Assembly (NCBI GenBank): GCA_021613535.1
Contig: CP075496.1
Span: forward strand, 11,160,001 to 11,224,000
DNA from: Adineta vaga
Taxonomy: Eukaryota > Animalia > Rotifera
DNA: 64,000 nt
Direction: 5' to 3'
Below, piece after piece: positions 39,026 through 44,746 of this stretch (its first letter is position 1; every line of letters begins with the position of its first letter). The position numbers and the translations under genes are program-made. A model generated the notes under the pieces. That model did not search any database. It worked only from the letters and a program-made list of their open reading frames with translations, and was not told where the DNA came from.

Positions 39026-40018
39026 TCATATTACTTCTAGCGACATCTGTCTTCTTTTAAAAAGATTTTATTGGTATGTATAGAATCCGATATAGAATAC
39101 CCAATGTTTTGTTTTCCATGCATAGATTTGTTTGTTCGTTTGTGCGATACGTATTGTCAGTAGACGACTGTCTGCTTTCGTCGATAATATATTTTCTTCT
39201 TTTCTTTTCCTTTTTTTTCATACGACCATTGAATTAGTAACACAAGCGAAGTACTTTTTCTCTTGTTTTATGCTTTCATCTTTATTTTTCATATATTATC
39301 GTTGTTTTTCTCCTTGAACTTACTTTTCCATAGATCTCAAAGTTTACTCAGAAAACTAATCGACCATTACTTTCTCTTAGTTAGTATCCATCTCTGATGA
39401 AAATCATCTAATCAAATGAAGATATGTAAGAATGATTATTTTTTCCTTTCTTTTTCTATACAACGACGAGTGCATCCAGTAGACGCATTTACAAACGCTC
39501 TTAGTTATATAAGAACAGCTGAATAATTTAACGAGAGAACAAAAGTAGAAGTTTTTTTTTCTAAATCGTAAATTTACATCTGCCTAATCTATATTTTCTC
39601 TTCAATTGGAATTTACACCCTTTTCTAATTAAATTTAATAATGGGTACACATGAGAATGAGAAAATAAGTAATGCCTTTTTTCACACAGGTGTAAACAAC
39701 GTACAATTAACGCTTATAATATCAATATAATTTCTTTGGCCATGTATACGACAGGTATTCTATTCATTGGTTTGATTTGCTATGTATTGAATGAAGTTAG
39801 TTTTTTTTCTTGTTTTTCGAAATAAAATGTATTTAATGGAGGTGTTTTTTCACATATTATGTGAAAATCCATGGATACCGATGAAAGGAGAAAAATCATA
39901 ACAATTGGTGCCTGTGTGCTTTCGCTTTTTCTTTGATCATCAGATAATATTAGTTTTAAAATATAAGATTTTCTTTTATTTTAGAATCGTTTTGTTTATC
40001 TTTTATTAAGTTAATAAA

Positions 40019-43000
40019 ATGGCTCCATTTACGTTTACGCTATTTGCTCCTTACAACAAACAAGCAGCATTACGAGTACGTCTTCTTTGTATTCATGAAT
40101 CTTTTTTTTCAACTGAAAATTTTCGTGTTATTATTAGTTGAAAAATGCACATGCGCGAATGTTTGGTGTTGATATTCGTAAGAGAACTACTTAGAATTGT
40201 AGATTGTTTTATTACATAATGAATCTTTTTATTTTGCTAGTTATGGAAAAAGATGAATCTGATGGTTATTTTCGAGCAACTGTAGATTTAGCTGATGGAA
40301 TTTTTCATTATCAATTTAAAAGTAGAAAAAGAAGATTATTCTATTAGACTCTAGAAGATATCGATTCTATTTTAATTTATAGTTCAAACAAAATCTTGGT
40401 TTGAACAAGAACCGGAACCTGCTTTACCTAATTATGACGATGATGCATACAAAGAAATGAGTAAGCTCTGAGAACTTTTTTTTGTGATGATGAATATGAC
40501 ATCAGATGAATTATTATCTTTCTTTAGCTGAAGAAGAAAAAAATGAAAAAGCAGAAGCATATAGTAAACTTCTTCAAGAAATTCGTGAACGAAATCGACA
40601 ACGTGAACATGAAGCTACATTTACTGAAATCTGGTATACTTTTGTTGATCCATATGCAACAGATGTTGATGAACGTGGCACTGGTAATTAAATTCTTCTA
40701 ATGAAAAGAGAGAGAGAGAGAGAAAGAAAACAGGCTATGTATGTATAAATTACAGTAAAGATGAAATAGAAATATCGTGTCATTTCATTCCATTTGAATG
40801 TTTTATGTCATGATGATTTCAGAGAAATATAAGAAAAAGATCTCGGTATATCATTTGCATAGCGTACGATTCAAAGAGTTTCTTGTTGATTGATTTTAGC
40901 AAAGATAATTATTAGATTAATAAATTAAACTCTTTCATTTTCGTTTAGATGATGCACATAAAGCTGTCGGTGTATTAACGATAAAAAATGGCAAACGTAT
41001 CATTGGTATACAAATTCAAATTTGTTTTCGAGTAAACAACGAAATAATCGAATTATTTATTTAGACGAATATGAATGGAAACATGATAATTGTAACTTGC
41101 CACCCGATGAAGAACTTGTTATCTATGAAATACATGTTGGTGATTTTTCTGGTGGAGAAAATGACACAAATGCGCGTGGAACATTCACTAATGTGACGAA
41201 AAAAATTGAATACTTAAAAGAACTTGGTGTGAATGCTAGTAAGTCATATTTTTGCTGCCTTTTACGAACACAATTGAATCTATTTTGTGTTATTTAGTTG
41301 AACTTATGCCAATTAAAGAATATCCTGGTAAGGAAAACTAAGCTTTATTTAATTGAAATATATAGGTTGTGCTTTTTTTTCCAATAGGAAACCATTCTTG
41401 GTGAGAATCGTTTTGATTTGCAATGAATAATTATGATAGATTTCTCTAATTTCGTCTTGGCTATTTATTTTTGTAGGGGGTATGTAGTTTGTTATTTTAT
41501 AATCACAAAATTTTGATAATCTCTTATTATTCAGATACAATCCACGTTATTATTTTGCTATCGAAACAAGTTATGGTACAACAGCAGATTTAAAAGAAAT
41601 GATTGATGAATTACATAAAAATGGTATTCGTGTTATTTTGGATGGTGTAAGTAAATATATCACGCAAAGAGATACATCCTCTTGATATTATATTAGGTAT
41701 ATAATCATTCCGATTCTTCTTCACCATTAACACAAATTGATCATGATTATTGGTATCATCATAATCCAAAAGATGTAACCAGTAAGAAAAATTCATGTTT
41801 TCTTTTTCAATAATGAAAATTGCAATTTAATTTTCGAGTACTATCTTAACATAAGAATTAATTACGGTTATCTCTTTTGCTTAGAAACTGTTCGATAAAT
41901 ATTTTCGTTTGCAAATAATAATTATCTTGTATGTATAAGATTATTTTAGAAGATTTGATATAATGATATGACCATCTTGATTTTACTTCTTATTAGAAAA
42001 CTTGTAATATTGTATTCTTATATTTATTCATTTGAGATTACTTACTTACTTGACATTGAAAGATATGACAATGAAAACTGAAAATTGAATCTTCATACAA
42101 ACTACTCGAATACTGACATTCAATTAATTGTTAAACTCTCCTTTCCTTTCTTAACATAATATTCGTTATTAAAATTAATAAAAAGTCTTATTTTTCTTGC
42201 CTAGTGTCATGGGGACCTGAATGGAATTATAGTACGTATATTTGTTTAAAACGTGACTCGAATATTTATAGTTCTATTTCTTATTGCTTAGGCTTTTATG
42301 ATCCCAAATATAACATTTGGCCAGCTCGTAAATTTGTTGGTGATTCTATTCGTTATATGGTTGAAGAATTTCACATTGATGGCTTTCGTTTCGATGCTGC
42401 TAGACAAATTCAAAATTTTGATTTTCTTCATTGGGTAGTGAAAGAAGCAAAGAAAGCAGCTGGACCTAAACCATTCTATTGTGTTGCTGAATTTCTACCG
42501 GATGAACCATGTATAACAAATATTGATGGACCTATGGATGGATGTAATAATTGATGAAATCTTTTACTTTTTAAAATTGAAGTATTATGTTTAGGCTGGC
42601 ACGATAGTTTCTATTGGGCATTACGTGATTTACTACTATATGATAATGTAGATATTGGCCGATTGAAAGCTGGTATTGATTGTCGTCAACAAGGCTTTTT
42701 AGGTGTGACAAATGTTGTGAATTACATTGGAAATCATGATCATGATCGAATGCTTGTTGAAATGGGTAATGAAACGATTGAATGAGTGATTCAAAGAAGT
42801 AAAAATTTCTTTATTTAGGTAAAGAACGATCGATTTTCGGTGAAGAAGCATTTAAACGTGTTCGTCTTGGTGTCGTTCTTCAAATGACAAGTATTGGTAT
42901 TCCAATGATTTGGATGGGAGAAGAAATGGGAGAGTAAGTTTAGAATTTGATGTGTATAAAAACATAAAAAATGCCTTTTTTTCCTAGATATAAAGAAAAA

Positions 43001-43685
43001 ACGATTGGTATAGCTAAAATTGATTGGTCATTAATTGCCGATCGCGAAGATAATTCTAATCAAATCAATAAGAATTTATTATCATTTTATCGTGGTTTAA
43101 TTAATTTACGGAAAAGCAATAAAGCATTTTATTCAACAAATTTGGATTTTATTCATGAAGATCATGATGCCAAAGTGTTAGCATATCAACGATGGTAATG
43201 ATAGAAAGAAAAGATTGATTGAAAGTTAGAAATCATTTCTTTCGATTTCATATATTGTAGGTCTGATTCAGGTGAACGTGTTGTTGTTATTGTTAATTTA
43301 TCTGGCAATTTTCTTGGTAAATAGACATATTTGATTGAATAAAAAGCAAAGAATATTATTTTATGTTTATTTAAATTTAGCTGACTATCATGTGCCAAAT
43401 ATGCCAGTTAATGGTTGGTGGCATGAATGGACATTTAATTATGATGCTAACGTTGAAAATAATGAAGTACGTCTTGATATAGCTGAACGTGAAGCAAAAA
43501 TTCTTGTCTGGCTTGGTGAAAATTATAATTCACCACAGGCTGAATCTGCTGCACAACCAGAAACAGTCCCTGTTGAATCTGAAAAGGCTACTGCTCAAGA
43601 ACAACAACAACCATCACAGACAGATTCTTCAACGAAATCAAAGCTTGATTCAACTCAAGCAGAAGTTCCTCTACCTCAATATTAA
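40019..43685 (+). CDS. GH13 alpha-amylase-family glucan enzyme of cyanobacterial type (CBM48-like N-domain plus catalytic domain), 19 exons
   Basis: FTLFAPYNK, DPYATD, VIYEIHVGDFSGGE, IELMPIKEYPGNHSWGYNPRY, LDGVYNHS, DGFRFDAARQ (nucleophile D), VAEFLP (acid/base E), IGNHD, IPMIWMGEEMG. All 18 introns are GT-AG and phase-compatible. Confidence 0.93.
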
Positions 43686-44746
43686 ATTTAGTCGTCATTA
43701 CATGACTTTTTCCTTTGTCATGAATGATCTTTTCAATCTTTCCTTTGATTTTTCTTTTGTTCAACACTGTTCGTCAAACGACTATACAGAAACGATTGGA
43801 TAAACAATTCTGATCCTTGCACTTCTTTTGTAATTTCTTGGTTTGTTTCACATTTTTTTACATGTATTCATGCGAAAGTCATTTCATTTTGTGTGTGTTC
43901 CAGTAGTTAACATTTCTCTTTCAGTACTTTTTTCTCTCTTATACCTGACTTTTTGACGAATGGAATAGTATCAACTGAAAAATTCCTTTCCAAGAAATTC
44001 TAACAATTTTTTGTTATAAACTCGATGCGTCCATTACATATGTACTCTATTATAATAGAAAAAATATTCTTGTTCGATTTCTTTCGTTTTTCAACATGTT
44101 TTTTTTCTTGTCATTTGTGATAATGAGGAAAATATTGGGAAGAAAAAGAGTTAGCATGTATTACAGACACAACTAGCGTTTTTCTCTTTATCTTGGTTTA
44201 AATAAAAGTATTTTATCATAAAAAATTTTAAAAACTTCAATATGATTGATACCTTCGTTAACAATTTGATATGAAAGATTCATCCTTCACAATAAGTGTG
44301 GAAACTTTTGTTTTTAGTAAATTATCTCAGAATCATATAATGAGCTAAACATGGATACAACAAATTCATGTTATATATAATAAGCACTCGTGTGATTGGA
44401 AAAGTAAAACTATCGAATAAATACCTTTTTTCCTTCATTATTCTTATTCTTAAGCTAGATAGAATAACGATTCGAATATCTTAGTCTTATATGTATATAA
44501 AAGTATGTGAACAAACACTACATCCATCCTTCATATCATTCTTGTTATTAAATAACCACGAATAGTGATTATACACTTCGCGAAGGTAGTTCGATTTTCA
44601 TGACATCATACAGGATTGCTGAAAATATTTTATAAAGGTTATTAGTCATACGCGTTACTTTCAGCTGGTCAAAGTTCCAGAAGTAAGATATTAAAAAAAT
44701 GTTTTTTTGTATGATTTTATTTCCCATTTACTATCATATAAACTTG

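Follow-up and report, generated by a model that had tools for sequence, protein, structure and literature searches.

Introduction

Internal exons of only 3 nucleotides (nt) have been described in animal genes such as mouse Ncam, Drosophila troponin T (TnT) and cytohesin-1, where the exon accounts for a diglycine/triglycine variant (PMC8042270, PMC6314551). In plants, microexons of 1-15 nt in APC11, VPS55 and other genes are constitutive, conserved and often mis-annotated (PMC8831610). Bdelloid rotifers, in turn, keep ancient horizontally acquired genes on both homoeologous chromosomes, and in Adineta vaga the homoeologs have diverged by ~13% and the chromosomes pair as 1-4 and 3-6 (PMC8494291). 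A literature search joining the terms 'bdelloid' and 'microexon' found no paper. Here we describe a 3-nt exon, GGG, in a GH13 gene of A. vaga that lies in a 64-kb stretch of contig CP075496.1 (positions 11,160,001 to 11,224,000; the window, within which all positions are given unless a contig is named). Our conclusion, to which we assign a probability of about 0.85, is that GGG is a genuine coding microexon, constitutively included, that its host is an expressed GH13 gene derived from bacteria, and that the exon arose from two intron gains 3 nt apart. It is a microexon without a demonstrated regulatory role.

Results

The letters GGG at 41477-41479 of the forward strand form exon 10 of the gene and stand between tttttgtag and gtatgt (41468-41485), a canonical acceptor and a canonical donor. 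The preceding exon 9 (41388-41400, 13 nt) ends in TTG and is followed by gtgaga, and exon 11 starts with ATACAATCC at 41535, directly after ttattcag. When GGG is included, the junctions read TG/G GG/A TAC, that is W-G-Y, and the joined peptide runs ...P-G-N-H-S-W-G-Y-N-P-R..., in which GGG completes the Trp codon with its first base and opens the Gly codon with the other two. Without GGG, the junction of exon 9 with exon 11 is a TG/A stop and the peptide terminates as ...N-H-S-stop. The joined frame was translated to check that it is open, and the results showed that the 672-codon frame over 19 exons is open only with the microexon included. The sole G run in the 134-nt interval 41401-41534 is GGGG, and the canonical splicing solution is therefore unique. 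In addition, the motif YAGGGGGTRWGT occurred once in the 64-kb window and in 0 of 100 dinucleotide-preserving shuffles.

Transcript evidence was obtained by aligning the assembled contigs of sequencing runs to positions 40000-43750 of the window (3,751 letters). Three runs from three studies, X1, X19 and X5 (the last labelled as another organism), were taken as RNA because their contigs carry GT..AG joints, and since no intron-less copy of the gene was found in the genome, the spliced contigs represent cDNA. Plain GT..AG joints were present for 14 of the 18 introns; a loose contig end is compatible with intron 3, and intron 1 had no contig support. Introns 8-10 are covered by one composite joint, from 41328 to 41534, holding the 14 letters AAACCATTCTTGGG (exon 9 plus GGG). 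Both edges of the joint are shared, 41328 being also the first G of exon 9 and 41534 also the last G of the microexon. Read through the joint, the contigs give exon 8, exon 9, GGG and exon 11 in that order, and the C in AAACC marks the joint-bearing contigs as the window copy as opposed to its homoeolog. RNA-contig depths over the gene are 50-250, and the contigs with exon 9, GGG and exon 11 have the same depth as those of the neighbouring exons. Given that the same 576-nt contig, with depths of 140, 115 and 15, spans exons 4-11, inclusion is the assembled main form. A skipping joint, from 41400 to 41535, appeared in none of the contigs of the three RNA data sets, contigs being assemblies that drop rare variants. 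The contigs of a DNA run (X15) were colinear with the genome, introns included, and its variant contig differs at five positions, all of them intronic.

The contigs also contained joints and fragments elsewhere in the gene. In X5 a second joint from 42233 to 42294 (AC..GC) stands beside the canonical one from 42231 to 42292 at approximately equal depth; rather than a non-canonical splice, this joint probably reflects a contig from the homoeolog or from an allele with differing junction bases. Low-depth contigs of X1 and X19 lie inside intron 12 (~42015-42198) and may represent unspliced precursor or a small separate transcript.

The genome assembly (G000) has six contigs that total 100.8 Mb. 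The window, with the gene, is part of C4, a chromosome-scale contig of ~15 Mb, at 30% GC. A homoeolog on contig C1 has all 18 introns at matching positions, including tctcag/GGG/gtatgt; it, too, has an open frame, which ends at a stop earlier than that of the window copy, and skipping of GGG likewise gives TGA at the junction. The exons of the two copies are 79-100% identical, the last one (59%) excepted, and overall identity is ~87% in exons versus ~48% in introns; the short introns are 40-54% identical, intron 9 at 46.2% and intron 10 at 49.1%. The exon distance of 12.7% and the two homoeologous contig pairs, C4/C1 and C6/C3, fit the published homoeolog values of A. vaga (PMC8494291). The last exon (43520-43682) of the window copy encodes a low-complexity tail rich in Q, S, T and E, which is missing from the C1 homoeolog via its earlier stop.

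Environmental rotifer contigs carrying orthologs were found via exon-sized open reading frames (ORFs) in a protein collection, and fall into three arrangements (Table 1). The sequence AG/GGG/GTATGT is kept in C1 and in the L021-type contigs, although the introns on either side have reached saturation, with 46-49% identity or no alignment at all; the exon is thus conserved beyond the neutral level. The genomic DNA of lineages L114 and L115, each of which is without part of the flanking introns, reproduces exactly the junctions TTG/GGG and GGG/RTA, and the peptide is the same as in the microexon-bearing copies. All three lineages with the microexon have GTATGT as the intron 10 donor, against GTGAGT in L115 with its 46-nt exon; the identity hints at constraint, in a comparison of very few sequences. 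A tree with outgroups, small in that these were a single bacterial sequence and one eukaryotic contig (L026), placed C1 as sister to C4, L021, L114 and L115 (89/85). A nucleotide tree gave a clade of L021 and L115 (99.7/100) and did not resolve the placement of C4, C1 and L114. Under any root off the terminal branches of L114 and L115 each absence is a loss, and loss is the simplest reading of these trees. Judged from these sequences, the microexon is ancestral to the ortholog group and was dissolved twice, in L114 via intron 10 and in L115 via introns 8 and 9. The joint loss of the adjacent introns 8 and 9 in L115 fits cDNA-mediated loss. Further downstream, intron 15 is present in C4 and C1 and missing in L021 (3489-3605), L114 (2412-2413) and L115 (2407-2410), and intron 16 is missing in L021 only, beside the missing intron 15.

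Table 1. Features of the GH13 gene around the 3-nt exon, and state of the same region in environmental rotifer contigs.
Feature	Position in window	Strand	Description
GH13 gene (alpha-amylase family, CBM48-type)	40019..43685	+	19 exons, 18 GT-AG introns, 672 codons
Exon 8	41298..41327	+	30 nt, ELMPIKEYP; in L115 part of one exon with exons 9 and 10
Exon 9	41388..41400	+	13 nt; last TG = first two bases of the Trp codon; letters within the RNA-contig joint
Intron 9	41401..41476	+	76 nt, gtgaga...tttttgtag, phase 2; missing from RNA contigs, precisely missing in L115
Intron 9 candidate branch site, tctaat	~30 nt before acceptor	+	read from sequence alone
Exon 10, microexon GGG	41477..41479	+	conserved in C1 homoeolog and in environmental contigs L021-L025 and L108-L113
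Intron 10	41480..41534	+	55 nt, gtatgt...ttattcag, phase 2; missing from RNA contigs, precisely missing in L114
Exon 11	41535..41646	+	112 nt; initial A = third base of the Gly codon (GGA); peptide YNPRYYFAIETSYGT...IRVILDG
Environmental contigs L021-L025, L108-L113			introns 8, 9 and 10 present; microexon kept, ttttccag/GGG/gtatgtc; introns unalignable; first base of exon 11 is G, Gly codon GGG
Environmental lineage L114			introns 8 and 9 present, intron 10 precisely missing; GGG = start of exon 11
Environmental lineage L115			introns 8 and 9 both missing, intron 10 present in same phase; exons 8, 9 and GGG = one 46-nt exon

The assignment of the gene to a family was based on exon peptides searched separately, exon by exon. 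Exon 11 alone matched PF00128 with 30.4 bits against a cut-off of 22, and exons 7, 14 and 16 gave weaker matches to collinear parts of the same model. The TreZ, GlgX, pullulanase (pulA) and GlgB models were matched in collinear order, the first three via exons 7, 11 and 14, and exon 14 was matched by solved pullulanases, isoamylases and TreZ; in this exon-by-exon scoring no piece of the gene reached an NCBIfam equivalog cut-off. The GH13 regions I-IV are represented by DGVYNH (exons 11/12), GFRFDAARQ and VAEF (exon 14) and GNHDHDR (exon 15), which align to the same motifs in the bacterial protein P0227; the catalytic Asp/Glu/Asp roles in these regions are ones that we take from general knowledge of GH13 enzymes. 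The predicted product is a GH13 protein of the CBM48-bearing group (TreZ/GlgX/pullulanase/GlgB-like).

The introns of the gene are mostly 50-76 nt long, and 12 of the 18 are in phase 1, with two in phase 0 and four in phase 2. Exons of at most 30 nt are exons 8, 9, 10 and 13 (30, 13, 3 and 27 nt). The two exceptions in intron length are intron 5 (265 nt, 40684-40948) and intron 12 (423 nt, 41782-42204), which are 4-7 times longer than the 65 and 63 nt of the homoeolog and are single-copy in the genome. An introner-like origin was considered and rejected: an all-versus-all comparison of the 18 introns gave only chance matches of 11-13 nt, with no mutual similarity, and introns 5 and 12 are single-copy.

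Outside rotifers, the closest relatives over the full length are GH13 proteins of cyanobacteria or other bacteria. The named matches were to Microcoleus, Nostoc, Calothrix, Scytonema, Tepidisphaeraceae and Polyangia together with Adineta, Rotaria and Didymodactylos, and other named animals were not among the matches listed. With the D. carnosus paralog as the query, matches were confined to the paralog group and cyanobacteria, a metagenome scan with exon 14 gave only generic bacterial GH13 matches (HIDGFRFD-type pattern) and no rotifer orthologs, and a profile search for annotated rotifer orthologs, made with a bacterial scaffold and separate exon rows, had only bacterial proteins among the matches listed. 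A bacterial contig (L027) carries an intron-less collinear gene, ...ELMPLKEYPGDYSWGYNPRYFF..., with W-G-Y in one piece and with PAS, GGDEF/EAL and response-regulator genes in its surroundings. Together, these comparisons support a bacterial affinity of the predicted protein, with a specifically cyanobacterial one as a possibility. On L027 (3650-5126) the homolog is called as three successive ORFs (CBM48, middle and alpha-amylase parts), which suggests long-read assembly frameshifts or a broken gene. Exons 4-5 of the window gene (40383-40683) encode a charged stretch of ~55 amino acids, EEEKNEKAEAY...RERNRQREHE, that is largely unmatched in L027. A related GH13 gene adjoining a RING-finger gene is found on the eukaryotic contig L026 (1586-3881; Logan SRR10663368 contig, 48% GC). 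It has fewer introns, shares the position of intron 7 (after GVNA) with the window gene, encodes SHSWGYN within one exon and carries an extra intron after ...YNFA; the small tree places it with the rotifer genes.

Within the A. vaga genome the gene has four paralogs, two in tandem on C6 and single copies on C3 and at C4:2.55 Mb, and all four encode W-G-Y (TGG GGT TAY) within one exon. The C6 pair has intron 7 in common with the window gene and is without introns 8-10, and the paralogs on C3 and at C4:2.55 Mb have one intron at a differing position. The window gene and its homoeolog have approximately twice the intron number of the C6, C3 and C4:2.55 Mb paralogs, in which several pairs of window exons are contiguous. 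Given that W-G-Y is continuous in the paralogs and in the bacterial homolog, introns 9 and 10 were gained after acquisition of the gene. The C6 tandem copies (G000:C6:7051600-7059000, L018) are ~4.5 kb apart and very similar in structure, and C3, which is homoeologous to C6, holds the related, more divergent copy at 8.998 Mb.

A preliminary description of this DNA, made from the letters of the sequence, had proposed a 3-nt exon between introns of 76 and 55 nt, and this is confirmed by the sequence, the frame and the contigs of three studies. Its further statements, that GGG restores a conserved W-G-Y-N-P and that skipping creates a TGA in the window copy, agree with the translations of the full join and of the join of exon 9 with exon 11. 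The gene had also been called a bacterial-type GH13, which the bacterial relatives and the intron-less collinear bacterial gene bear out, and a foreign gene that gained its microexon after acquisition, which holds in that the paralogs and bacteria encode W-G-Y in one exon.

Discussion

The history that we favor for this exon begins with two spliceosomal introns, which would have been gained 3 nt apart (TTG^GGG^ATA) in a formerly continuous sequence, both gains being older than the split of the C4 and C1 homoeologs. In a genome with short introns, introns of 50-80 nt would be recognised by intron definition, and with recognition across the intron the length of the exon would therefore set no limit on recognition. 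Since only 3 nt separate the intron 9 acceptor from the intron 10 donor, their simultaneous occupation is hardly possible; the two introns are probably removed one after the other, in the manner of a recursive splice site that keeps 3 nt. Related lineages would later have dissolved the microexon by precise intron loss, leaving the protein unchanged.

The preliminary description had gone further and proposed that the exon is a splicing switch, in which inclusion gives the enzyme and skipping a TGA-bearing substrate of nonsense-mediated decay, turning the gene on or off, for example in desiccation. It is true that both the window copy and its homoeolog yield TGA exactly at the skipped junction, that a 3-nt exon is intrinsically hard to recognise, which makes some skipping plausible, and that a minor isoform could escape the contigs. 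However, the search for junctions in RNA that had been suggested along with the switch recovered the inclusion junction exactly, in three runs, and no skipping joint in the assembled contigs of these three data sets. Introns 9 and 10 are no more conserved between the homoeologs than the other short introns. In the L021-type contigs exon 11 starts with G, and skipping there would read TGG-TAT, an in-frame W-Y without a stop; the TGA hangs on the synonymous third base of the Gly codon, and the stop is therefore not conserved. Conservation of AG-GGG-GT, which had likewise been put forward as a check, was found in C1, L021-L025 and L108-L113, but the microexon has been dissolved in L114 and L115 with the protein remaining the same. 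With inclusion-only contigs, ordinary intron divergence, a stop that is not conserved and two losses, the switch is not upheld, and we consider a regulated cassette unlikely. If GGG inclusion were lowered in desiccation or stress, the result would be a lineage-specific off switch of the copies in which exon 11 starts with A, a by-product of the two intron gains, and this too seems improbable to us.

A constitutively included microexon has also to be weighed against readings in which GGG is no exon of its own. The interval 41401-41534 might be one intron with non-canonical sites, or GGG might be an error of assembly or a product of editing or slippage; three nucleotides are too few for short-read aligners and contigs to position by themselves, and GGG is seen in the contigs as letters within a joint. 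Such a reading is very doubtful, as the only GGG of the interval lies between a strong acceptor and a GTATGT donor, no GT-AG pair over the whole interval yields W-G-Y, three lineages share the arrangement despite scrambled introns, and L114 and L115 are each without exactly one side, with TTG/GGG and GGG/RTA in genomic DNA. That the gene is a decaying pseudogene or a bacterial contaminant with a fortuitous exon structure is remoter still: the bacterial affinity of the protein, and nothing further, speaks for it, and it is already refuted by the RNA joints (14 of the 18 GT-AG introns as plain joints and introns 8-10 in the composite one, at the depths given above) and by a syntenic-type homoeolog with an intact frame and far higher identity in exons than in introns; the locus moreover lies on a chromosome-scale contig, at 30% GC.

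Several points weigh against our account of a constitutive microexon born from two intron gains. The RNA evidence consists only of assembled contigs, to which a minor skipping isoform, a dependence on conditions and the order of intron removal are invisible, and the RNA label of the runs is itself a guess, which we accepted via the GT..AG joints. The sequential splicing of introns 9 and 10 is something that we infer only. The root of the ortholog group is supported only moderately (89/85), and the C4-L021 distance of 14.5% exceeds the C4-C1 distance of 12.7%, which leaves the timing relative to the genome duplication uncertain.

As a gene of bacterial origin it owes all of its introns to gains, and it offers a clean, datable record of the birth and death of an extreme microexon. 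The window gene shows that animals with short introns splice 3-nt exons reliably, and it lends itself to testing which intron is removed first where splice sites almost abut; no new regulatory mechanism is revealed by it. Annotation pipelines for bdelloids probably miss such exons, which would yield false 'pseudogenes' among transferred genes; the remark of the preliminary description that gene predictors would normally overlook this one is plausible in the light of the plant work (PMC8831610).

Recursive, or ratchet, splice sites are zero-length exons (AG/GTAAGT) that form parts of giant introns. The exon described here resembles them in the succession of an acceptor and a donor, which implies stepwise removal of the flanking intron segments; unlike them, it retains three G that are coding in the RNA contigs, its introns are short (76 and 55 nt), and the stepwise order is one that we infer. 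With the exons of Ncam, TnT and cytohesin-1 it shares an internal length of 3 nt, canonical AG/GT flanks and the addition of one residue, which in cytohesin is likewise a glycine. Those exons, however, are alternative, with both isoforms in-frame and functional, and belong to native genes, whereas the exon of the window gene is known only as included, its skipping in this copy would lead to a stop, and it sits, between secondarily gained introns, in a gene of bacterial origin. The gene resembles the acquired genes described in bdelloids (PMC8494291) in being of bacterial type, having introns, being expressed and occupying the homoeologous pair 1/4; microexons are not described in that work. 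The plant microexons (PMC8831610) belong to genes that were not transferred and have been validated by reverse transcription (RT)-PCR, whereas the rotifer case is known here from assembled RNA contigs. In both, a tiny coding exon is required for the correct protein, has long been conserved and is easily missed by aligners and annotators, and in both it has been fused to a neighbouring exon in some lineages by precise, RT-type intron loss.

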